This document shows positions 1-20,358 of a stretch of DNA of 64,000 nt, in pieces. The DNA is from Takakia lepidozioides (Eukaryota; Plantae; Bryophyta), in contig CM060731.1 of the NCBI GenBank assembly GCA_030704615.1, positions 54,126,001-54,190,000 of the forward strand, given 5' to 3'. How positions within the stretch are numbered: position 1 is the first letter of the stretch; every line of letters starts with the position of its first letter. The position numbers and the translations under genes were made by a program. The notes beneath the pieces are model-generated. The model saw nothing but the letters and a program-made list of their open reading frames with translations. It did not search any database and was not told where the DNA came from.

Positions 1-790
1 ATCGTGACCTGGTTGGGCACCACTCCTTCCGCCATTCATTTGTTCATAGGTCTACAAAGCCTCCATCCCAAACCCATGCTGGGCATATACTGCGATCATC
101 GCATTCCATGACCCTACATTTCGTTCAATCATATTATTAAACAACTTTTCTTTTGCCTCATCGATGCTCCCGCACTTGGCACACATCCACCAGGGTAGGG
201 TCCAAGATGATATTCACAACAATTCCAGCTTTCACAATGTCAGCATGGACAGCTTTGCCCTTCTCCAGGTCTGCCAGGCTGGCATGCAAACACTGACAAA
301 TGTGACCTGGTTGGGCTTCACCCCTTCCTGCATCATTTTGTGATGGCTCTCCAGAGCCTCCATACCACATCCACATTGGCCATATCCTACGATCATTGCA
401 TTCCACGACACCACATCTCGATCAGCCATACTATCAAACACTCCCTTTGTATCATTGATGCTTCCACAGTTGGCATACAAGTAGACAAGTGTAGTTCCCA
501 AGATCATATTTGGCACAGTTCCAGCTTTCATGATGTCAGCCTGGACCTCTCTGCCCTTCTCCAAAGCTGCCAAGCTGGCACAGGCATTGCAAACAGACAG
601 AAACGTGCCCTGGTTTGGCTTCACCCTTGTCGGCTCATAGGTCTCCAAAGCTTTTAACCCATACCCATGCTGGGCGGCAATCATCACATTCCATGACACC
701 ACATCTCGTTCAGCCATACTGTCAGACACCCCCTTTGCATCCTTTGATTTGCTGCCCCGCATTTGGCATACATGTCCATCAGGGTGGTCT
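1..790 (-). pseudogene. Degenerate PLS-class PPR gene fragment, continues left of the window
   Basis: ORFs 232..762 and 158..406 encode P/L/S motifs (VVSWNAMI, GVKPNQVTFV, TLVYLYANCGS) broken by frameshifts; the 5' side is cut by a LINE 3'-tail fragment at ~790. Confidence 0.85.
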
Positions 791-970
791 TGTGTGAAGG
801 GTCTTCTAGTGGATATCTGGAAAACCCAAACTTATTGACTTTATCAAGGTAAGTCACACTACCAGAGTGAGCCCCTCACAAAGGTGGTATCTGTTCCCTT
901 TTGTTCTGCCCCATCTGGGCACCTGGTCTATGGCCACAGGCTACAGCAAACACAATCTCATGAGTACATT
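790..970 (+). mobile_element. LINE family-1 3'-terminal fragment ending at a (TG)n microsatellite
   Basis: Matches the 3' end of the LINE at 48376-50539 (gaagggt.ttcta..ggatatctggaaaac...caaggtaagtcacactac...catgagtaca). Confidence 0.75.
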
Positions 971-1538: not shown

Positions 1539-4500
1539 TCACCAGTACTCTCCACAAGAACAAACCCCATCTTGAAAGTGGTGAAAGCGGTTTGCATCCC
1601 GTACAACAATTACTCGTCCAACAATCTTTGACATGAACTTGGTGGCTGTGTGGCAGTCACCACAAATCCGAAGGTTCTTAATGACACGGAGAGGTGTCCC
1701 AGGGGCTGTGCTGATCAGCCCAAATGCAATGGCCAGCTTCTCACTGTGGTGGCAAAGAGAAAATTCCTTTCGCTCCTCCTCCACATCATGCAATATGAAG
1801 CGCGTGTCAGGCACATAACCTGCCTTCTTCATCTGTTCAGACAAACTTCTCAGCTCAGCATGGATTTCCTCAGTTTGTGGATGCACTTGGTCATCCACCA
1901 TGAATCTGTGGACCCTGTCGCCAACCTCAATGCAGCAGCGGCCTGGCTCTTTTATAACACCTCTGACCTTCATCATCTTTCTCACCTTTGCAATATTGTC
2001 CCACCTTCCAGCTGCTTTGCAATATTGTCCCACCTTCCAGCTGCTGCATAGATGTTTGACAGTACCACATAAGTTGCAGCATCCTGTTGATCCCACTTGA
2101 GAATCCATTTTGCCGCACGTTCTGCCACCTCCAGATTGCCATGAATTCTACAGGCTCCAAGCAAGGCTTTCCACACCACGGCAGGAGGTTCGATTAGCAT
2201 GTTATTAATGAAGTCCTCTGCTTCATCCAGTCGCCCAGCACGACCAAGAAGGTCCACCATGCAACCAAAGTGTTCCACTGTAGGAGTAAGGCCGTGATCT
2301 CGACTCAGCGAATAAAAAATGTGTCTGCCTTCATCCACTAGGCCCCCATGGCTACATGCGGAGAGAACGGATAAAAAGGTGACACTGTTGGGCTTTAAGC
2401 CTTCCTTTTGCATGCCCTCAAATAGTTGCAGGACCTCCCTATGACAGCCATGCTGGGCATATCCTGCAATCATCGCACTCCATGACACCACATTTCGTTC
2501 AACCATACTGTCAAACAGTCCCTTTGCATCCTCGATGCTCCCACATTTGGCATACATATCCACAAGGGTATTGTACAGAATAATATCGGGTACAATACCA
2601 GCTTTCATGATATTAGCATGGACCTCTTTGCCCTTTTCCAGGGCTGCCAGGCTGGCACACGCATTGCAGACACAAACAAATGTGACCTGGTTGGGCTTCA
2701 CCCCTTCCCGCATCATTTGTTCATAGGTCTCCAAAGCCTCCATGGCACACCCATTCTGAGCATATCCTGTGATCATCGCACCCCATGACACCACATTTCG
2801 TTCACGCATATTGTCGAACACTCTCTTTGCATCCTCGATGCTCCCACATTTCATATACATGTCCACCAGGGTAGTATCCAAGATGATATTTGGCACAATT
2901 CCAGCCTTCATGATGTCAGCATGAACGTCTTTGGCTTTTTCCAGGGCTGCAAGGCTTGAACAAGAATTGCAAATGCTAACAAATATTACCTGGTTGGGCT
3001 TCACCCCTTCCCACACCATTTGGTCATATGTCTCTAAAGCCACCATCCCACACCCATGCCAGGCATATCCTGCGATCATCGCACCCCACGACACGACATC
3101 TCGTTCAGCCATATTATCAAACAATTCCTTTGCATCCTCAATGCTCCCACATTTTGCATACATGTCCACCAGGGCAGTGGCCAAGATGATGTTTGGCACA
3201 ATTCCAGCTTTCACAATGTCAACATGGACCTCTCTGCCCTTTTCCAGGGCTGCCAGGCTGGCACATGCATTGCAAACAGAAACGAACGTGACTTGGTTGG
3301 GCATCACCCCTTTCTGCATCATTTGATCATAGGTCTCCAAAGCCTCCATCCCATGCCCATGCTGGGCATATGCTGCAATCATCGCACCGTGACCCTACTA
3401 TTCATCCGTTTAGGCATTTGCAAACACTGCCTTTGCATCTCTTACCTCACTCCCACATTTGGCATACATGTCCACGAGGGTAGTGTCCAAGACAATACTT
3501 GGCACAATTCCAGCTCTCACAATATCAGTATGGACAGCTTGGCCCGTTTCCAGGTCTGCACCGCTGGCACATGCCTTGAGAACGCAAAGGAACGTGACCT
3601 GGTTCGGTGTCACCCCTTCCTGCATCATTTGCTCATAGGTCTCGAAGGTCTCCCCACAATATCCATGCTTGGCATATCCTGCCACCATTGTATTCCCTGT
3701 AATCAAATCTCGTTCAGGCATTTTGTCAAAAACTTGGAGTGCATCCACAATGCTCCCACACTTGGCATACATATTGACGAGTACGTTGTGTAGAAACATG
3801 TCTGGCTTGAACCCACTTTGGATAATGTGGGCATGCACCCACTTTCCCTCTGCTAAGCCTCTCATCTTGATGCACTCCTGCAACAGATAGACATAAGTTT
3901 TGGAGTTTCCCCCACTCCCTCCTTCATGCAAAAGCTGCAGTGCCTCTCTCAATTGTCCTGCCTTAGACAGTGCCCTCATATCCCCACATCTTTCAAAAGA
4001 GGTTGTCATGGTGGGGGTGCCTGACTTTTCTGATGCTGCTTTGAATTGGACATACATCCAGAGAGGTCTCTTGATCCATTGCCCCAGGTGGTTGCTCTTG
4101 TGCTTGAAATCTACTCCTCTAGGATGTATGTTTCTGCCTCGATTGTCCCACCACTCACTGGGGTTTGAAAAATATTCCTTCCAGAGCTTCTCCTCCTTTA
4201 TATTTTTAATGTTTGGAAATTTGGCCTTATCCAGCTCCTCAAATTCGCCATCCACCCTTACAGACTTCTTGTATCTATCAATCCATAGGCCCTCCTTCAT
4301 ACTCTTCTGCTTGGAATCTGGTCTGCTAAGATGGATCTTTCTGGCTGGATTCTCCAAACACGTTACTAGGGATTGGAAAAAAATTCCTCCAAAACATCTC
4401 CTTGTCTGTATTTTCAATTTTCGAGATTTTTGCCTTTAGCTCCATCCAGCTTCTCCACTTCACCATCCGCCCACGCAGATCCCTTGCAGCAATCGATCAA

Positions 4501-10106: not shown

Positions 10107-13100
10107 TCACCAGTACCCCCCACAAGAACAAACCCCAGCTTGAAAGTGGTGAAAACGGTTCGCATCCCGTACAACAATTGCTCGCCCAACAATCTTTGAG
10201 ATGAACTTGGTGGCCGTGTGGCAGTCACCACACACCCGAAGGTTCTTGATGACAAGGAGAGGTGTCCCAGGGGTTGTGCTGATCAACCCCAAAGCAATGG
10301 CCAGCTTCTCACTGTGGTGGCAAAGAGAAAATTCCTTTTGTTCCTCCTCCACGTCATGCAATACAAAACGTGTGTCAGGCACATACCCCGCCTCCTTCAT
10401 TTGCTCAGACAAATCTCTCAGCGTAGCATGGATCTCCTCAATTTGAGGATGCAATTTGTCATCTACCACAAAGCTGTGCACTCTGTTGCCAACTTCAATG
10501 CAGGAGCAACCTGGCTCCTTTCTGACACCTCTGACATTCATCATTCTTCTAACCTTAGCACTATCGTCCCACCTGCCTGCTGCAGCATAGATGTTGGATA
10601 GCAACACGTAAGTTCCAGCATCCTGTTGAGCTGACTTGAGAATAGATTTCGCCGCACGTTCTGCCACTGCCACATTGCCATACACTCTGCAGGCACCAAG
10701 CAAGGCTTTCCAAACCACAGCATCTGGTTTGATTGGCATTTTGTTAATGAAATCCTCAGCCTCGTGAAATCGCCCCGCACGGCCAAGAAGGTCCACCACG
10801 CAGCCAAAGTGCTCCACTGTGGGAGTGAGACCATGATCTTGACTCATGGCATCAAAGAAGTGTCTGCCTTCATTCACTAGGCCCCCATGGCTACATGCAG
10901 ACAGAATACATAAAAAGGTGATGCTGTTGGGCTTTAAGCCTTCCTTTTGCATTCCTTCAAATAGTTGCAGGGCCTCCGTACGACAACCATGCTGGGCATA
11001 TCCTGCAATCATCACACTCCACGACACCACATTTCGTTCAGCCATACTATCAAATACTCCCTTTGCATTCGCAATACTTCCACATTTCGCATACATGTCC
11101 AAGAGGTTATTGTTGAGAATTATATCTGGTGCAATCCCAGCCTTCGTGATGTCAGCATGGACCTCTTTACCCTTCTCCAAGGCTGCCAGGCTGGCACACA
11201 CATTGCAAACGCAAACGAACGTGGCCTGGTCGGGCTTTATGCCTTCCCGCATCATTTGCTCATAGGTCTCCAGAGCCTCCATACCCCACTGATGCTGCGC
11301 ATATCCTGCAATCATTGCATTCCATGACACCACATTTCGTTCAGCCATATTGCTGAATACTCCCTTTGCATCCTCAATGCTGCCGCACTTGGCATACATG
11401 TCAACAAGAGTAGTGCCCAAGATGATATTTGGCACAATGCCAGCTTTCATGATGTCAGCATGGACAGCTTTGCCCTTTTCCAGGGCCCCAAGGCAGGCAC
11501 ACGCATTGCAAATGGAAACAAATGTGACCTGGTCAGGCTTCACCCCTTCCCACATCATTTGCTCATAGGTCTCCAAAGCCTCCCTCCCACACCCATGCTG
11601 GGCATATCCTGCTATCATTGCACCCCATGACACCACATCTCGTTCAGCCATATTGTCAAACACTCCCTTTGCATCATTGATGCTTTCGCATTTGCAATAC
11701 ATGTCCACCAGGGCAGTGTCCAAGATGATATTCGGCACAATTCCAGCTTTCATGATGTCAGCATGGACCTCTTTCCCCTTTTCCAAGGCTCCCAGGCTGG
11801 CACAAGCCTTGCAAACAGAAGCCAACGTTACCTGGTTGGGCTTCAGCCCTTCACGCATCATGTGGTCATAGGTCTCCAAAGCCTCCATCCCACACCCCTG
11901 CTGAGCATACCCGGTGATCATTGCACCCCATGACACAACGTTTCGTTCAGCCATATTTTTGAACACTCCTCTTGCATCGTTGATGCTTCCACATTTGGCA
12001 TACATGTCAACAAGGGTAGTGTCCAACATGATATTTGGCACAATTCCAGATCTCATGATGTCAGCATGGATGGCTCTACCCTTTTTCAGGTCTGCCAGGC
12101 TGGCACAAGCCTTGAGAACGCAAATGAATGTCACCTGATTGGGTGTCAACCCTTCCCCAATCATTTGCTCATAGGTCTCCAAGGTCCCCTTACAATATCC
12201 CTGCTTGGCATACCCTGCGAGCATTGTATTCCACGCAACCAAACCCCGTTCAGGCATTTTGTCAAACACAAGGCGTGCATCCACAACACTCCCACACTTG
12301 GCATACATATTGACGAGGTTGTTGTAAAGAAAGAGATCTGGTCTGAATCCACTTTGGATAATGTGGGCATGCACCTGCCTTCCCTCTGCCAGGCCTTTAG
12401 TCTTGATGCACTCCTGCAGGAGACAGACATAAGTTTTCGAGTCTGCAGCAATGCGTCCTAACTTCAAAATCTGCAGCGCCTTTTGCAGCCGTCCTCCCTT
12501 ACATAGTTCCCTCACATCCCCACATCTTACAGAGGAGGTCGTCATGGTGAGGGTGCCTGACTGAGACAGCTGTGCTCCCGCCGCATTCAATCGACCATCT
12601 ACGCACGCAGGTCTCGTGCACCTATCATCGATCCATAGCCTCTCGTTGGTGCTCTTGTAGTTGAAACCTGGTCTTTTACGACTGATCTTTCTGCCTTGAT
12701 TGTCCAAATCACCAACCACCCAAGCAGGTTTCTCGTGCTTACGAATGCATAGCCCCTCGTTGTGCTTAAAGTCTGCTTCTCTAAGATGGATCTTTCGGCC
12801 TCGATAGTCCCACAATCGACTGGGGCCTGAAAAACATTTGCTCCAAAGCTTCTCCACGTCTGTGTTTTGGCTTTTTGAATATTTGCATGTGTAGCCTCGT
12901 TGCTCGCCACCAGGCTGGCCATGAGCTTGATCCTCTTCTACCGGTCTCCTCTGCAACTCAATTGGGATCAAACTGCTCGAAAAATGCGCAGCGAATCCGT
13001 ACATTCCGGACAGACCACACTTTTCTGAAGTTCTACGAAGAGTGCCGATTTCGCAAGCAGCGCAGCCCAAAGGCTCATGAGGGCACCCCCAGGATGTCAT

Positions 13101-13130
13101 GCGTGCCATGCGTATTATACGCGCTTCCAT
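10107..13130 (-). CDS. Gene B: intronless PLS-class PPR-DYW organellar C-to-U RNA editing factor (1007 aa) with N-terminal degenerate PDF motifs; ends GYW
   Basis: Single ORF: transit-peptide-like N-terminus, about 1.5 PDF-like motifs, 17 PPR motifs (L-S, 4x P-L-S, P2-L2-S2), E1/E2, PG box, HHSEKLA...CGDCH...HHF..G.CSC. Confidence 0.93.
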   Translation of the reverse strand: MEARIIRMARMTSWGCPHEPLGCAACEIGTLRRTSEKCGLSGMYGFAAHFSSSLIPIELQRRPVEEDQAHGQPGGEQRGYTCKYSKSQNTDVEKLWSKCFSGPSRLWDYRGRKIHLREADFKHNEGLCIRKHEKPAWVVGDLDNQGRKISRKRPGFNYKSTNERLWIDDRCTRPACVDGRLNAAGAQLSQSGTLTMTTSSVRCGDVRELCKGGRLQKALQILKLGRIAADSKTYVCLLQECIKTKGLAEGRQVHAHIIQSGFRPDLFLYNNLVNMYAKCGSVVDARLVFDKMPERGLVAWNTMLAGYAKQGYCKGTLETYEQMIGEGLTPNQVTFICVLKACASLADLKKGRAIHADIMRSGIVPNIMLDTTLVDMYAKCGSINDARGVFKNMAERNVVSWGAMITGYAQQGCGMEALETYDHMMREGLKPNQVTLASVCKACASLGALEKGKEVHADIMKAGIVPNIILDTALVDMYCKCESINDAKGVFDNMAERDVVSWGAMIAGYAQHGCGREALETYEQMMWEGVKPDQVTFVSICNACACLGALEKGKAVHADIMKAGIVPNIILGTTLVDMYAKCGSIEDAKGVFSNMAERNVVSWNAMIAGYAQHQWGMEALETYEQMMREGIKPDQATFVCVCNVCASLAALEKGKEVHADITKAGIAPDIILNNNLLDMYAKCGSIANAKGVFDSMAERNVVSWSVMIAGYAQHGCRTEALQLFEGMQKEGLKPNSITFLCILSACSHGGLVNEGRHFFDAMSQDHGLTPTVEHFGCVVDLLGRAGRFHEAEDFINKMPIKPDAVVWKALLGACRVYGNVAVAERAAKSILKSAQQDAGTYVLLSNIYAAAGRWDDSAKVRRMMNVRGVRKEPGCSCIEVGNRVHSFVVDDKLHPQIEEIHATLRDLSEQMKEAGYVPDTRFVLHDVEEEQKEFSLCHHSEKLAIALGLISTTPGTPLLVIKNLRVCGDCHTATKFISKIVGRAIVVRDANRFHHFQAGVCSCGGYW

Positions 13131-14304
13131 GGCTGGTTAGGTCAGATCTTCCTGCAATGACCAGCTGACTGCTGTCCACCGCAGCTCGCACTCTGGACTG
13201 GCCCTTACTCAGCTCCCGTAATCACCCAAACCCCATCTCTCTCTCGTCTTCACATCGCACATGTCAGACGACTTCCAGTGAAGTGAACGGGAATGGAAGG
13301 GCCTTCCCTTCGCCAAGCCATCGAGGAACGAAAACAACTCTGTAAAGATTTATGAAGGACCCAAAGGTGATTGCGAGAGGAAGCTGCCCCAGCCATCTCT
13401 GCCCTATGGCAAAATAGACATACTTGTGCCCTTTGTTACGCATTAGAAACTAGCTACCTAAAGACGGTCACAAGAACAGAGGCATCGGGACTTCCAATTC
13501 CTCTGTTTTCTGTTGTACGATGATCACTGATGATGCAGACATCCTAAAATGTGGACTACTAAGTTCGCGGGAGGAATAAATGTATCCCAGAACTCTCTTC
13601 CAAACTTCTGTATACAAAACTCTACTCTGCCGTAGCAAGTTGTATCCACACGTTGGATTGCTAAAACAAATTGTCTGACAACCTCATTCTGAGGCTCACC
13701 TTCAGCCGAATCATCTGCACACTGTTGCAATTAGGAAGAATCTGAACAACAAACCATTAAGTATGAAGCTTACAGTTTTTTCTTCGCCTCTTCTCTTCCA
13801 CTGTTATCCAACAAACACGAAGGGGATTGAAGGCCAGTACCTGGCCGTTGCACTCTCCTTTAGGTCAGAGAGGAGATGCCGTCCATGCAGGTCCGACATG
13901 ATCGCACGAGCATTGTGAGAATGACGACCGCACCCTGAGGAGATGCATGCGCTGCCAAGTGCAGTGGGAAGGAAGCAGCCAGCCTGTCCTGTTGGGGACG
14001 TTCGGGGGAGGGGAGGAGAGGGAGATGACGTGTCCTTGGAAAGAACACAAGGAAAGAGACGTAGCAAATGCAGCAGCACATGATGGTTCACACCCCTGCT
14101 TCATCCTTGAAGCTGGATTTCGATTGTTCGTGCATCGGGGTTGGAATTGCGCGGACCAAAATATATCTTCCTGCCTCTTTCTCTCTCACCGGCAGGGATG
14201 GCAGCGTCTTCCCTCGTTCTCCTGCACTCGCATGTCCACTCCATACCCAAGGCCATACCCAAGGCCCTGTCCTCTCGCTTCGATCATGGAAGAGGCCTCG
14301 CGTC

Positions 14305-17300
14305 ATGCTGCGGGTTAACTGTGGAGCTGAAATCGGAACCCCCTTGGCAATGCGCAGCGGACGGAGTCCCTTGCATGTGGTTGCTAGGGCGCCTCGCCAA
14401 CCTTCAGGGGTGCAATTGAAGTTAGGTAATAAGACGAAACACTTTGAGGTTTCCTTTCTTGGGGTCGCTGTGGTGTGTGCGCATTAGGATCCAGGCCTGG
14501 AATTGTCTTGTGGGCAATTCAGCAGAAACGAATGTACTCTGGGGCAAAGAAGCAAGAGAGCACACGGGATAATTAGACAAGGCCGATAACTGGAATCTGT
14601 GGAATGTAGGTCAACGCTGGAGCATAGAACAGCGCTGGCAGGAGTTCTTTAGAGATCCTTCACAATGGTGGGACTGCAGCGTTGAGAAGGTGAGCTTCCT
14701 TCATTTAGGATGTGACGGAGTCTTAGGGAGTTTTGACTGAAGTCTGGTATAGTATTGAGTGGACTGGGTTGTACCCGTAGACGTTGAGTCAGAATCTCGC
14801 TTTGTCTGCAAAAACTGCTTTTACTGTCAGTATCGTGGGTTGTTCTTCCTAAGCAGGCATTAAAGTAGGATGCACAATGTCCTTTCCCTGGAGTTTGCAA
14901 GTTACTTGGGAGGGATGATACTCTGGCTGCTTGGCTGCTCCCTGGTGGGTTTCACAGACTACTCCAAAATCTCCAGACTACAGACATAAGCTGTGCACGC
15001 AAGAAGGCTTGTGGATAGAGGGATGGTTCAATCCTCCTTGGGTGAAAGAAGCACTAATTGCCATGCCACAAGATCAAGAACAGGCTGGTGATGGCGGAAA
15101 GATATCAGAGTGTTCTGATTCTGGTGTAGATGGTGGAGCTCCTTCAAAGCTAGCAGATGAAAGTGAGTATGAGTAGCAGTGACATGATTAGAGGGGGAGC
15201 CTTGTCATGCACAAGCTTGTTTAGCATGTGTGGACATTTTTGAATGTTCCCCATTGTTTCTAGTGCAAAGGAGCTCACAATGACTTGCATTGCTGCTGTT
15301 GAAAGCTACACTAGCACTTGTCCATAAAGAAACCTGTCAAAAGTGTTGATGCTGTCAGAGTTTCGGGCATGAAGGTGTACCGTGGAGCATGGAGCAGCGC
15401 TGGCATGAGTTTTTAAATGACTCTTCACAATGGTGGGACAACCGCAATGGCAAGGTGTGCTATCTTGATGTACAATGTGGAGAAGTTTGTCTGTTCTGCA
15501 AAAGTGGGCTCTTCCTGTCCGTATCATGATTTGTTCTTTTTCCAGGTGTTTGAGGGTCAGGTTGGTCTTAGGAGGCCGTGTTTGAATCTATGGCTGCTCA
15601 GCTGCATCGTGGTGGTTATCACAGACCAATCTGAGATCACCCAACTACAGACACAAGCAGTGCACACAACAGGTCCTTTGGGTTGATGGTTGGTCAAATC
15701 CTCCTTGGGTGAAAGAAAAGCTAGCTGCTTTCATGACACAAGGTCAAGGAGGATGGGGTGAGGGCACCTTCTTTTTCAACGTGTTTCGGCCTGTTTTGTC
15801 CTCTTATCTTAATTGTTCCTAATGCTGAATTCTGCAAGTTAGCTTGTCGGGTGTGGTTTGGAGTGATTTTGACATGCTACTGCCAATGTGGCAACAGGCA
15901 AATATCCAAAAACAAAAAACAGAGATGAGGAGAATCTTTGGAAAGAATATTTTCTGGACCCCAGTCCATGGTGGGACAATCGATGCAAAAAGGTGAATGC
16001 CTTTTAAAAGCAGACAAGATTCAACAAGATTCATCGCAAAGCTGTCTCTCCCCCTAGCACATTTTTGAAGTGTAGGAACTTTAGGTGTGATAAGTACAGT
16101 TGGGGTGTCTGCTAGGAAAAATTAGCTGTTGTTGTTAGCTGCTAGCAGCAAGGGAAGGATCTATGCACTATTGGTGCTGAGGGAGGGATAGCTGAAGGAG
16201 CAGGGATGGAGTGTGCTCCAGATTCATCCGAGAGGGCCGGATTTCAAGCACAAGAGTACCTACGATTCACTGTGGATTGACAGCTACAAGAAACCTACAT
16301 GGGTTGATGGTCAACTGGAAGCAGCAGCAGCAGCAGCACAGTTGATAAAAATAGGCACCTCTACCATGACCACAGCTTCTGAAAAAGGACCCAGAGAGGG
16401 AGTCCACAATACCTCTTATGGCACTTCTGGGCATGTGAGGACATTATGTGAGGCAGGGCACCTGAAAGAGGCTCTACAGATTTTGAACCAAGGAGGCACT
16501 TCAGCCGATTCAGATACTTATGTCTGTCTCTTGCGTAAGTGCATCAAGACGAAAGGCCTGGAAGCTGGAAAGCAGGTGCATGCTCACATAATCCGAAATA
16601 GATTCAAGCCAAATGTTTTTCTACACAACACCCTTGTCAACATGTATGTTAAGTGCGGGAGTATTGTGGATGCACACCAAGTGTTCAACAAAATGCCTGA
16701 ACGAGGTTTGATCACATGGAATATAATGATTGCAGGGTTTACCAAGCATAGGTGTGGGGAGAATGCCTTGGAGACATATAAGAAAATGATTCGGGACGGG
16801 GTGAGGCCCAACCACGTCACGTTTGTTTGTGTTTGCAAGGCATGTGCAAGCCTGGCAGACCTGGAAAAGGGCAAAGATGTCCATGTTGACATCATCAAAG
16901 CCGGAATTGTACCAGATGTCATTCTGAACACAGTCCTTGTGGACATGTACGCCAAATGTGGCAGCATCAAAGATGCGAAGGGAGTGTTTGACAATATGGC
17001 TGAACGAAATGTGGTTTCCTGGAGTGCTATGATTGCAGGATATGCTCAGCATGGATGTGGGATGGAGGCTTTGGAGACCTATGAGCAAATGATGCGGGAA
17101 GGGGTGAAGCCGGACCAGGTCACGTTCGTTTGTGTTTGCAATGCGTGTGCGAGCCTGGGAGCACTGGAAATGGGCAAAGAGATCCATAGTGACATAATCA
17201 AAGCTGGAATTGTACCAGATGTCATTCTGAACAATACCCTCGTGGACATGTATGCAAAAGGCAGGAGCATTGAAAATGCAAAGGGAGTGTTCGACAAAAT

Positions 17301-20300
17301 GGCTGAACGAAATGTGGTATCCTGGAGTGCTATGATTGCAGGATATGCGCAGCATGGGTTTGGGGTGGAGGCTTTGGAGACCTATGAGCAAATGATCCGG
17401 GAAGGGGTGAAGCCCAACCACATCACATTTGTTTGTGTTTGCAGTGCGTGTGCGAGCCTGGCAGTCCTTGAAAAGGGCAAAGAGGTCCATGGTGACATGA
17501 TCAAAGCTGGAATTGTACCAGATGTCATTCTGAACACTGCCCTTGTGGACATGTATGTCAAATGTGGCAGCATCGAGGATGCAAAGGGAGTGTTTGACAA
17601 TATGGCTTATCGAGATGTGGTGTCGTGGAACATAATGATCACAGGATATGTGCAGCATGAGTGTGGGATGGAGGCTTTGGAGACCTATGAGCAAATGATG
17701 TTGGAAGGGGTAAAGCCGGACCAGGTCACGTTTGTATGTGTTTGCAATGCCTGTGCAAGCCTGGCAATGCTGGAAAAGGGCAAAGAGGTCCATGGTGACA
17801 TCATCAAAGCTGGAATTGTACCAGATGTCACTCTGAACAATAAGCTGGTGGACATGTATGCAAAAGGTGGGAGCATCGGAGATGCAATCGGAGTGTTCAA
17901 CAATATGGTGGAACGGGATGTGGTGTCGTGGAACACGATGATTGCAGGATATGCACAGCATGGGTGGGGGATGGAGGCTTTGGAGACCTATGAGCAAATG
18001 ATGCAGGAAGGGGTGAAACCGGACCACATCACATTTGTTTGCGTTTGCAGTGTGTGTGCAAGCTTGGCTGCCCTGGAAAAGGGCAAAGAGGTCCGTGGTG
18101 ACATGATCAAAGCTGGAATTGTTCCAGATGTCATTCTGAACACTGCCCTTGTGGACATGTATGCCAAATGTGGCAGTATTAAGAGTGCAAAGGGAGTGTT
18201 TGACACTATGGCAGAACGAGATGTGGTGACGTGGAACGCGATGATCGCAGGATATGCACAGCATAGGTGTGGGATGGAGGCCTTGGAGACCTATGAGCAA
18301 ATGATGTGGGAAGGGGTGAAGCCAGACCGGGTCACGTTCATTTGCATTTGCAATGTGTGTACGAGCCTTGCAGCACTGGAAAAGAGCAAAGAGGTCCATG
18401 GTGACATGATGAAAGCTGGAATTGTACCAGATGTCATTCTGAACACTGCTCTCGTGGACATGTATGCCAAATGCGGGAGCATTGAAGATGCAAAGGGAGT
18501 GTTCAACAATATGTCGAAACGTAATGTGATGTCATGGAACGCTATGATTGCAGGATATGCGCAGCATGGGTGCAGGATGGAGGTTTTGAAGACCTATGAG
18601 CAGATGATGCGAGAAGGGGTGAAACCAGACCAGGTCACTTTTGTTTGTGTTTGCAAAGTGTGTGCAAGCTTGGCAGCCCTGGAAACAGGCAAAGAGATCC
18701 ATGGTGACATCATCCAAGCTGGAATCGTTCCAGATGTCATTCTGAACACTTCTCTTGTGGACATGTATGCCAAATGCGGGAGCATCGAGGATGCAAAGGG
18801 AGTGTTCGACTATATGGCTGAACGAGATGTGGTGTCCTGGAATGGAATGATTGCAGGATATGCCCAGCATGGGTGTGGGATGGAGGCTTTGGAGATCTAT
18901 GAGCAAATGATGCAGGAAGGGGTGAAGCCGGACAGGGTAACATTTGTTTGCATTTGCAATGCGTGTGCAAGCCTGGGAGCACTGGAAAAGAGCAAAGAGG
19001 TCCATGGTGACATGATCAAAGCTGGGATTATACCAGATGTCATTCTGAACAATGCCCTCGTGGACATGTATGCGAAAGGCGGAAGTATTGAAGATGCAAG
19101 GGGAGTGTTTGACAAGATGGCTGAACGAAATGTGGTGTCCTGGAGTGCTATGATTGCAGGATATGCGCAGCATGGGCGTGGGATGGAGGCTTTGGAAACC
19201 TATGAGCAAATGATGCGGGAAGGGGTGAAGCCCAACCACATCACATTTGTTTGCGTTTGCAATGCGTGTGCGAACCTGGCAGCACTGGAAAAGAGCAAAG
19301 AGGTCCATGGTGACATGATCAAAGCTGGAATTATACCAGATGTCATTCTGAACACTGCCCTCGTGGACATGTATGCCAAATGCGGCAGCATCGAGGATGC
19401 AAAGGGAGTATTTGACAATATGGCAGAACGAGATGTGGTGTCATGGAACACGATGATTGCAGGATATGCCCAGCATGGTTGTGATATGGAGGCCCTGCAA
19501 CTATTGGAAAAAATGCAAAAGGAAGGCTTGAAGCTGGACAGTATCACTTTTATATGTGTTCTCTCTGCATGTAGCCATGCTGGCCTAGTGGATGAAGGCA
19601 GACATTACTTCGACTCTCTGAGTCAAGATCATGACATCACTCCAGCAGTGGAGCACTATGGCTGCATGGTGGACCTTCTTGGCCGTGCGGGGCGATTGGA
19701 TGAGGCAGAGGACTTCATTAACAAAATGCCAATGAAACCAAATGCTGCAGTGTGGAGGGCCTTGCTTGGTGCCTGCAAAATTCATTGCAATGTGGAGATG
19801 GCTGAACGTGCGGCAACATCTATTCTCAAGTGGGATGAACAGGACGCCACAACTTATGTGTTGCTATCAAACATCTATGCCGCAGCTAGCAGGTGGGACG
19901 ATACTGCAAAGGTGAGAAAATTGATGGAGGTCAGAGGGGTTAGAAAGCAGCCAGGCCACTGCTGCATTGAGGTCGGCGACAGGGTGCACACCTTCGTTGT
20001 GGATGACAAATTGCATCCTAAAATTGAGGAAATCCTTGCTAAGCTGAGAAGATTATCTGGGCAGATGAAGGAGGCAGGTTATGTGCCTGACACACGTTTT
20101 GTACTGCATGATGTGGACAAGGAGCAAAAGGAATGCTCTCTTGGCCACCACAGTGAGAAGTTGGCTATTGCTTTTGGGCTGATCAGCACGGCCCCTGGGA
20201 CGACTCTCCGAATCATCAAGAATCTTCGGGTGTGTGGTGACTGCCACACCGCCACCAAGTTCATCTCAAAGATTGTTGGGCGAGCAATTGTTGTACGGGA

Positions 20301-20358
20301 TGCTAACCGCTTTCACCACTTCGAAGATGGCGTTTGTTCTTGTGGGGATTACTGGTGA
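14305..20358 (+). CDS. Gene C: 7-exon PPR-DYW editing factor (~1590-1620 aa) with three N-terminal PDF motifs and ~32 PPR motifs
   Basis: Phase-consistent exons 14305-14425, 14610-14689, 14958-15087 (or -15162), 15375-15454, 15625-15757, 15898-15992, 16222-20358. The last exon is the 1381-aa ORF (9 P-L-S triplets, P2-L2-S2, E, DYW ending CSCGDYW). The 5' exon boundaries are inferred. Confidence 0.85.
16730..19480 (+). repeat. Tandem 303-bp (101-codon) P-L-S repeat array in gene C
   Basis: Near-identical units recur every 303 nt (e.g. ggagacctatgagcaaatgatg; aaagctggaattgtaccagatgtcattctgaac). Confidence 0.9.

Follow-up and report, generated by a model that had tools for sequence, protein, structure and literature searches.

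OSB-type PDF modules ahead of the PPR array in PPR-DYW genes of Takakia lepidozioides and in proteins of other seedless plants

PPR-DYW proteins are the RNA-editing enzymes of plant organelles, and work is under way to turn them into programmable RNA editors. To our knowledge, their N-termini have so far been regarded as mere targeting peptides, and we know of no counterpart in seedless land plants of the MORF helpers of seed plants. A conserved module of ssDNA-binding type on many moss, lycophyte and fern editors would be an overlooked functional part of these enzymes; it could explain affinity or localisation in hyper-editing lineages without MORF proteins, and would put a small portable single-strand-binding module on offer for synthetic editors.

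Several groups of described proteins are close to the genes reported here. In characterised editing factors such as PPR56, nothing but a targeting peptide and a short stretch precedes the first PPR (PMC10482289). A survey of editing-factor fusions (PMC13386178) includes RRM-PPR, MORF-PPR and MORF-RRM proteins, which are comparable in that a nucleic-acid-binding or helper domain is carried by a PPR protein in a lineage-restricted manner; PDF and OSB are nowhere mentioned in it, and the PDF, being without a Pfam model, is overlooked by domain-based surveys. OSB proteins consist of an SSB-like OB fold followed by C-terminal PDFs. In PMC6963530 and PMC4166229 (citing Zaegel 2006), the PDF of OSB1 is described as sufficient for ssDNA binding, with ssDNA preferred over RNA, and high-affinity ssDNA binding via the PDF is given for AtOSB1 and AtOSB2.

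The window (the whole stretch of 64 kb that was analysed) contains three genes, A, B and C, in which PDF modules precede a PLS-PPR array and a DYW deaminase, as follows (scores are from a PDF profile that contains no window sequence).

About 5253-1542, minus strand: gene A, a pseudogene built like genes B and C: six PDF copies or remnants (5253-4043), then a PLS array and a DYW that is out of frame
10107-13130, minus strand: gene B, an intronless ORF of 1007 codons with leader, PDF copy B1, half copy B2, linker, PLS-PPR, E/E+ and DYW
13131-14304: intergenic region from which genes B and C diverge head to head, with no long ORF and no PDF match
14305-14425, plus strand: putative first coding exon of gene C, ATG at 14305 (open frame; AG/GTAATA donor in frame with the next exon)
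14610-14689, plus strand: gene C exon, N-half of PDF unit 1 (30.3 bits; donor GT at 14690)
14958-15162, plus strand: gene C exon, C-half of PDF unit 1 and acidic spacer (41.4 bits; acceptor AG at 14956-57, phase 0)
15375-15454, plus strand: gene C exon, N-half of PDF unit 2 (29.0 bits; acceptor at 15375 from frame alone)
15625-15742, plus strand: gene C exon, C-half of PDF unit 2 (39.6 bits; phase-0 acceptor at 15623-24, inferred donor at 15743)
15898-15992, plus strand: gene C exon, N-half of PDF unit 3 (33.0 bits)
16222-20358, plus strand: last exon of gene C, 1381 codons in one ORF: C-half of PDF unit 3 (16222-16326), linker, some 30 PLS PPR motifs, E, E+, DYW and stop

The motif was identified using a second profile, built from the window motifs alone and used for a protein search. 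This search returned 853 protein matches, including named OSB1/OSB3 proteins (Arabidopsis thaliana OSB1 at 49.6 bits, residues 188-238), and an SSB-type OB fold lay upstream of the motif in 69 of the 150 best; matches to named OSB and SSB-OB-fold proteins had E-values of 1e-17 to 1e-52. Since a profile derived from the window only finds named OSBs and proteins with an OB fold followed by PDFs, the assignment to the OSB PDF made in the initial annotation holds, and the similarity at profile level on which it depended is present. The independent profile gave 7-60 bits to the window pieces, versus a maximum of 10.6 bits among 700 shuffled pieces, and when all 64 kb were scanned in six frames the significant PDF matches were restricted to the 5' parts of genes A, B and C. 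With both halves summed, the gene C units reached 82.5 (C3), 71.7 (C1) and 68.6 bits (C2), and retained 17/17, 14/17 and 13/17 of the OSB-conserved positions, respectively; the C-half of unit 3 alone scored 49.5 bits and retained 11 of 11. Pfam yielded no model for the PDF pieces, and word-index protein searches with the N-terminal regions of genes A and B gave no match; the homologues were found by the exhaustive profile search.

As in OSB proteins, the module has about 50-55 residues, with conserved Trp, Pro, Trp-Asp, Arg, Lys, Pro-Asp-Phe-Lys-His-Lys, Leu-Trp and Pro-x-Trp, occurs in tandem, and carries an intron at the position seen in a liverwort OSB gene. Unlike in OSB proteins, the PDFs stand at the N-terminus, ahead of the PPR array and the deaminase. 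No SSB domain was detected by Pfam in any N-terminal piece or in the whole genes B and C; lacking the OB fold, the window proteins are not members of the OSB family and have the module alone in common with it.

The remainder of these proteins resembles PLS-class PPR-E-E+-DYW factors (Physcomitrium PPR56/PPR65, Arabidopsis DYW proteins) in its PLS array, E/E+ motifs, HSE and CxxCH signatures and intronless PPR-DYW block. Pfam PPR_2, PPR, PPR_1 and PPR_3 were found at E-values of 1e-44 to 1e-163 in genes B and C, and DYW_deaminase at 6.6e-42 in gene B, along with PPR families, and at 4.7e-44 in the last exon of gene C, along with PPR families, E_motif and Eplus_motif. HSEK, CGDCH and a terminal GYW/DYW occur in both genes, gene C ending in ...GDYW, and by these motifs the DYW domains of the window are classed as the ordinary C-to-U RNA type. 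The difference from characterised editing factors lies ahead of the array, where one to three PDF modules (six in the pseudogene) are placed, in gene C on separate small exons. The three genes also have in common the linker G-T-x-T-M-T-T ... L-x-x-A-L-Q-x-L, as had been noted initially.

In gene C (14305-20358, plus strand), three PDF-like units stand in tandem ahead of the PPRs, all at the places given in the initial annotation and each interrupted by a phase-0 GT-AG intron (halves at 14624-14689 / 14958-15065, 15389-15454 / 15625-15732 and 15924-15992 / 16222-16326). Exon 1 encodes a basic, Ser/Ala-rich putative leader of 40 residues. The exon structure was compared with contigs of two runs, X1 and X2, both taken, as a guess, to be RNA. 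The 15992/16222 junction (GT..AG, 229 nt) was present in three contigs of X1 and one of X2, and the 15454/15625 junction in contigs and loose ends of both runs, in which coverage was deep in exon bins and near zero in intron bins. Position ~14674 was joined to 14961 in a paralogue contig, and paralogue contigs broke off near 15750. The exact-match contig of X1 covering 14253-14422 extends upstream; no contig supports the exon-1 junction, the sole exact-match contig ceasing to match at 14422. A candidate 5' junction at 14420/14610 (GT..AG) is out of frame, the donor at 14425 of the initial annotation is in frame, and the donor at 15163 was placed from frame alone. Searches were run on single exons, and frame continuity over the junctions was checked by arithmetic. 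Joined contigs could also come from DNA of intronless paralogues such as genes A and B.

A gene-model artefact, in which the PDF exons upstream of 16213 would be a separate OSB-like gene or dead exons, is suggested by two points: in gene C, the start codon as well as three out of six junctions are based on frame logic and not on transcripts, and the runs are RNA by guess only. It is nevertheless very improbable: the C-half of PDF unit 3 lies within the same uninterrupted 4.1-kb ORF as the PLS-PPR array, the E/E+ motifs and the DYW deaminase, no SSB-type OB fold was found near the PDF exons, and the same layout occurs in annotated homologues from four other genera. For gene B this explanation is already refuted, as a whole PDF unit shares one ORF with PPR-DYW. 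The covalent joining of PDF to PLS-PPR-E-DYW claimed at the outset is thus borne out in both genes.

The copy numbers first proposed for genes A (about six) and B (about 1.5) were confirmed as counts, with the correction that gene A is a pseudogene and that the gene B copies have lost conserved residues. Gene A has in-frame stops at 3412, 3400 and 3397, several frameshifts across the PDF array, and a 29-nt tandem duplication near 2010-2070 that throws its DYW out of frame; its PDF copies scored 60.2 (A6), 41.3 (A1), 28.8 (A4), 22.9 (A5C), 15.9 (A3N) and 7.2 bits (A2C). It is a dead copy. Gene B has 1.5 decayed units, the full copy B1 (12860-12696; 45.2 bits against the independent profile, 13/16 conserved positions retained) followed by the C-terminal half B2 (12695-12579; B2C, 24.1 bits); its PPR-DYW frame is open and its PDF relaxed. 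Well-kept PDF units at the locus are those of gene C only, so that the locus looks like one intact gene with three good modules (C), one relaxed gene (B) and one dead gene (A), adjoining one another. The decay of the PDF in A and B while B keeps its PPR-DYW open indicates that at least some copies can do without the module.

PDF-PPR proteins were also found outside Takakia. Among the 150 best of the 853 matches, 12 combined PDF and PPR, with the PDF N-terminal every time; they come from Diphasiastrum, five Sphagnum species, Adiantum and Pteridium. Two of these matches (P0128 and P0109) have the complete E/E+/DYW set, and none of the 12 has an OB fold. Annotated proteins such as Diphasiastrum complanatum KAJ7558666 / KAJ7517632, Sphagnum KAH8950714 / CAM6033764 and Adiantum KAI5061374 have the layout of the window genes, i.e. 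one to three PDFs, linker, PLS PPR and E(/E+/DYW), and the phase-0 intron within their PDF sits where it does in gene C. They are only 41-59% identical to the window proteins, and the window adds a local cluster of intact, relaxed and dead copies. Each of the three gene C units has its phase-0 intron after W-[WF]-D-x-R-x-x-K, and so do PDF-PPR genes of Sphagnum and Diphasiastrum and an OSB gene of Riccia. In a tree of 235 PDF units, which is poorly resolved given the short domain, the PPR-linked label changes five times, and only one change is forced by well-supported branches, so that the tree is compatible with one origin or several. Considering the 17 OSB-conserved positions, 93% are kept in PPR-linked PDFs versus 96% in OSBs. 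The dN/dS ratio was 0.31 (C1-C2) and 0.21 (C3-A6), i.e. below 1 where measurable, as expected if the proposed module is maintained, and about 1.0 for A6-B1.

Given the matches in other seedless plants and the intron position common to these genes and a liverwort OSB gene, the fusion is, on comparative grounds, real, ancient, under constraint and not specific to this locus. By the same comparison, the combination of PDF with PPR-DYW is old and widespread in seedless plants, annotated but unnamed in mosses, a lycophyte and ferns; no paper describing a PDF-PPR architecture was found in the literature, an outcome in favour of the initial annotation. The initial proposal is partly supported: the fusion is real, but it is no new system confined to this place. 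Taken alone, the window has modest value as a further locus of a large family, yet intact, relaxed and dead copies adjoin in it.

The constraint on the module also bears on whether it has a role in the protein. The PDF could be a hitch-hiking leader, an OSB-derived 5' part that once gave retrocopies a promoter, a 5' exon and a transit peptide and is without any nucleic-acid role. PPR families do expand by retroposition (PMC13386178), genes A and B are intronless with decaying PDFs (conserved residues lost, A6-B1 ratio near neutrality), and the 3-kb PPR-DYW frame of gene B is still open. We consider this explanation rather unlikely, because the PPR-linked PDFs of mosses, a lycophyte and ferns remain close to OSBs at the conserved positions, the three units of gene C score like canonical OSB units with dN/dS of 0.2-0.3 in that lineage, and a mere leader would not preserve invariant Trp, Asp and Phe across such a span.

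Genes C and B are probably organelle-type C-to-U editing factors in which an acquired N-terminal PDF adds sequence-independent single-strand binding. As in editing factors that have been characterised, the PPR array would recognise RNA lying upstream of the target cytidine, which the DYW domain would then deaminate; the PDF units, which from their N-terminal location would be nearer the 5' side of the stretch covered by the PPRs, would add sequence-independent binding to flanking RNA or to nucleoid ssDNA, thereby raising affinity or holding the factor near nascent transcripts. As for origin, OSB-like PDF exons may have been joined to an intronless PPR gene, with the later copies B and A shedding the introns, probably through retroposition. 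Added single-strand binding is possible, and so is nucleoid tethering; as OSB PDFs are reported to favour ssDNA over RNA, a role as RNA-binding helper is not the obvious reading.

Tethering of the editor to organellar ssDNA (nucleoid, R-loops, transcription bubbles), resulting in co-transcriptional editing, would be a special case of added single-strand binding rather than an alternative to it. It would fit the conservation of PDF residues in the fusions and the ability of the OSB1 PDF by itself to bind ssDNA in preference to RNA (PMC6963530 and PMC4166229); canonical editing factors function without such a tether, and we regard this version as improbable. The same low probability is given to the broader proposal that a large class of seedless-plant editing enzymes uses the PDF on transcribed organellar ssDNA, with editing coupled to transcription or occasionally acting on DNA; if true, the organelle genome-maintenance and RNA-editing machineries would be linked. 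Deamination of cytidines in ssDNA by the chimera, guided by the PDF, had been raised as a further option and is highly unlikely: nothing speaks for it except that one protein has an ssDNA-binding module together with a cytidine deaminase, whereas the DYW is of the ordinary RNA-editor type with E and E+ motifs, a PLS array of 16 to 30 motifs (a sequence-specific RNA reader) is still intact, and the PDF is located at the protein end far from the deaminase.

A structure model of the PDF was compared with known structures using Foldseek against the PDB (E > 6) and VIA-align against 48,161 chains (best Z 3.5); no known fold could be named in either comparison, which does not imply novelty. In the model itself, which is confident (AF2, pLDDT 92.4), the predicted fold of the PDF is compact, with a helix, a beta-hairpin and a second helix.

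Within its first 20 kb, the window contains three paralogous PPR genes, designated A, B and C, and a fourth fragment:

16213-20358, plus strand: terminal single ORF of gene C, with a long PLS-type PPR array, E, E+ and DYW deaminase (Pfam, DYW 4.7e-44)
13130-10107, minus strand: gene B, a single ORF of 1007 codons whose domains match those of gene C (Pfam, DYW 6.6e-42)
~5253-1542, minus strand: gene A, laid out as B and C, dead
1-875, minus strand: PPR gene fragment interrupted by frameshifts and stops and truncated at the window edge; probably one more pseudogene in this cluster

Genes B and C lie head to head with a gap of ~1.2 kb, and the gene C deaminase has its HSEK, CGDCH and terminal DYW all intact. 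Gene A is a dead copy: stops interrupt its frame at three positions (3412, 3400 and 3397), a 29-nt tandem duplication puts the DYW domain out of frame, and the N-terminal repeat array has several frame changes. Two minus-strand antisense ORFs within the gene C PPR array (16621-18399, 592 codons; 18532-19308, 258 codons) repeat in step with the PLS triplets and seem to be by-products of repetitive codon structure rather than genes.

The tandem PDF motifs reported by the initial annotation before the PPR array of all three genes were recovered by motif coordinates and ORFs. In gene C they form three pairs of small open segments 5' of the large ORF, on the plus strand:

14624-14689 and 14958-15065: N-half and C-half of unit 1 (C1)
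15389-15454 and 15625-15732: N-half and C-half of unit 2 (C2)
15924-15992 and 16222-16326: N-half and C-half of unit 3 (C3)
14690-14957, 15455-15624 and 15993-16221: intra-unit introns, GT..AG, phase 0
14305-14425, 14610-14689, 14958-15162, 15375-15454, 15625-15742, 15898-15992 and 16222-20358: in-frame chain of gene C, with canonical sites at all junctions

This chain was checked through coordinates and per-exon frames only, all searches having used single exons. The C-half of unit 3 shares its ORF with the PPR-DYW block, so that at least this half-module is joined to the editor without any assumption about splicing. Gene B carries a full PDF unit (B1) and a further C-half contiguous with PPR-DYW in its single ORF, and gene A has six contiguous PDF copies or remnants (A1-A6). 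The linker said to be common to the three genes was found in each, where it leads into the first PPR-like helix pair. A 12-nt tandem repeat (unit AGGCCATACCCA, 14238-14262) directly upstream of the putative gene C start may be polymorphic in length, since an exact-match contig from run X1 has one additional unit.

No Pfam model exists for the PDF motif, and two word-index protein searches returned no matches. A profile built from 14 window pieces only, searched against 1.84 billion representatives, matched 853 proteins at E <= 0.001 (295 at E <= 1e-10). Pfam scans of ten short matches showed, in most of them, an SSB-type OB fold ahead of a C-terminal PDF motif, as in OSB proteins; with a local OB-fold profile, this layout was found in 69 of the 150 best matches. 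The matched protein P0014 shares 91% identity with a Raphanus protein named "protein OSB1, mitochondrial", and its own relatives include the matches P0058 ("organellar single-stranded DNA binding protein 3"), P0104 ("protein OSB1, mitochondrial-like"), P0066 and P0083. Residues 188-238 of A. thaliana OSB1 (P0231, 261 aa) scored 49.6 bits with the window-only profile. Since a window-only profile finds named OSBs and OB-fold proteins, the identification as the OSB PDF motif was correct.

Some proteins with neither OB fold nor PPR have long tandem arrays of 9-15 PDF-like units (P0002 cluster of Effrenium voratum, P0010, P0012, P0115); one set is dinoflagellate, and an ENA contig encodes one of 4336 residues. 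Descriptions of the PDF usually confine it to green plants. Merged gene models or OSB expansions probably account for three long angiosperm proteins with many PDF units or OSB parts plus unrelated domains: P0001 (Kingdonia uniflora, 1160 aa, 13 PDF units), P0038 (Coptis, "kinesin motor domain-containing") and P0053 (Striga, "ICR2").

Against an independent profile of 121 homologous units, window sequences left out, window pieces scored 7-60 bits, and the best of 700 shuffled pieces reached 10.6 bits. Summed halves gave 82.5 (C3), 71.7 (C1) and 68.6 bits (C2), and A6, B1 and A1 gave 60.2, 45.2 and 41.3 bits. A six-frame scan of all 64 kb gave no significant match outside the 5' parts of the three genes. 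An AlphaFold2 model of one Diphasiastrum unit (122 aligned units, two of them from the window; pLDDT 92.4, pTM 0.79) predicts two helices separated by a short beta-hairpin that bears the WWD and PDF segments; Foldseek and VIA-align searches with this model gave no convincing solved relative.

The fusion, for which a co-occurrence check had been proposed, is present elsewhere: 12 of the 150 best profile matches also match the gene B PPR region, all with an N-terminal PDF and none with an OB fold. They come from Diphasiastrum complanatum (several loci), Adiantum capillus-veneris, Pteridium aquilinum and Sphagnum (fallax, jensenii, tenellum, troendelagicum, compactum), are annotated as hypothetical or generic PPR, and are 41-59% identical to the window proteins. 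P0128 (Diphasiastrum) and P0109 (Sphagnum) have PDF, PPR, E, E+ and DYW; others end in E motifs, and P0008 has three PDFs and PPRs only. As for prior description, a full-text search of non-subscription literature turned up no paper that connects PDF or OSB to PPR or DYW; the words OSB and PDF are absent from a 2026 survey of domain fusions in editing factors across the kingdom, and PPR is not mentioned in a 2026 OSB family study. PPR-DYW editors with OSB PDF modules are apparently undescribed.

Protein-to-gene mapping showed that W-[WF]-D-x-R-x-x-K is immediately followed by a phase-0 intron in an OSB gene of the liverwort Riccia fluitans, a position common to all three gene C units and to the Sphagnum jensenii and Diphasiastrum PDF-PPR genes; A. 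thaliana OSB1 and genes A and B are without it. This distribution fits a scenario in which OSB-type PDF exons would have been joined onto an intronless PPR gene, genes A and B having later lost the introns as retrocopies. The resolution of a tree of 235 PDF units is too low to demonstrate a single origin. In the Diphasiastrum PDF-PPR gene (L004), an extra phase-2 intron (2724/2852) separates the last PDF exon from the PPR exon, whereas Sphagnum and gene C lack this intron and have the last PDF half within the PPR exon.

Splicing was examined by comparing 14250-16650 with two small contig sets bearing the same species label, whose RNA nature is only guessed. The family is large, as shown by hundreds of contigs that matched at 90-95% likeness. 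Coverage was deep in exon bins and zero or near zero in intron bins. Joining of the unit 3 N-half exon to the PPR exon was seen at 15992/16222 (GT..AG, 229 nt) in four contigs; 15454/15625 was covered by one joint and loose ends, and the unit 1 halves were joined in a paralogue contig. The gene C start and the three inter-unit junctions had no support in either set over this interval. Joined contigs could also derive from DNA of intronless paralogues such as A and B.

The genes place a conserved OSB-type module ahead of an ordinary editing-factor body, and the interpretation of the initial annotation is supported in part, for the OSB identity of the PDF and its fusion to PPR-DYW editors. PPR proteins lie on RNA with their N-terminal motif at the 5' end; PDF units might touch single-stranded nucleic acid in the nucleoid or on the 5' side of the PPR footprint, which would add affinity or localisation. 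According to two papers that cite Zaegel 2006, the OSB1 PDF suffices for ssDNA binding and prefers ssDNA over RNA (PMC6963530, PMC4166229). Deamination of ssDNA by the fusion is less likely, because the RNA-reading array is intact and the DYW domain ordinary.

Conservation was scored at 17 positions at least 85% conserved in 295 OSB PDFs. These are kept at 96% in the OSB PDFs themselves, 93% in 42 PPR-linked PDFs of database proteins, 17/17 in C3, 14/17 in C1, 13/17 in C2 and 13/16 in both A6 and B1, and far fewer are kept in the other gene A remnants. With dN/dS (Nei-Gojobori, exon halves counted separately then summed; ~58 codons, hence low power), the near-neutral value held in the initial annotation to speak against its reading was obtained for A6-B1 (1.0), the other pairs lying below 1 (C1-C2 0.31, C3-A6 0.21, C3-B1 0.50). 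By these comparisons, the PDF is constrained in the gene C lineage and the wider family and relaxed in genes B and A, where it may be a purely hitch-hiking leader.
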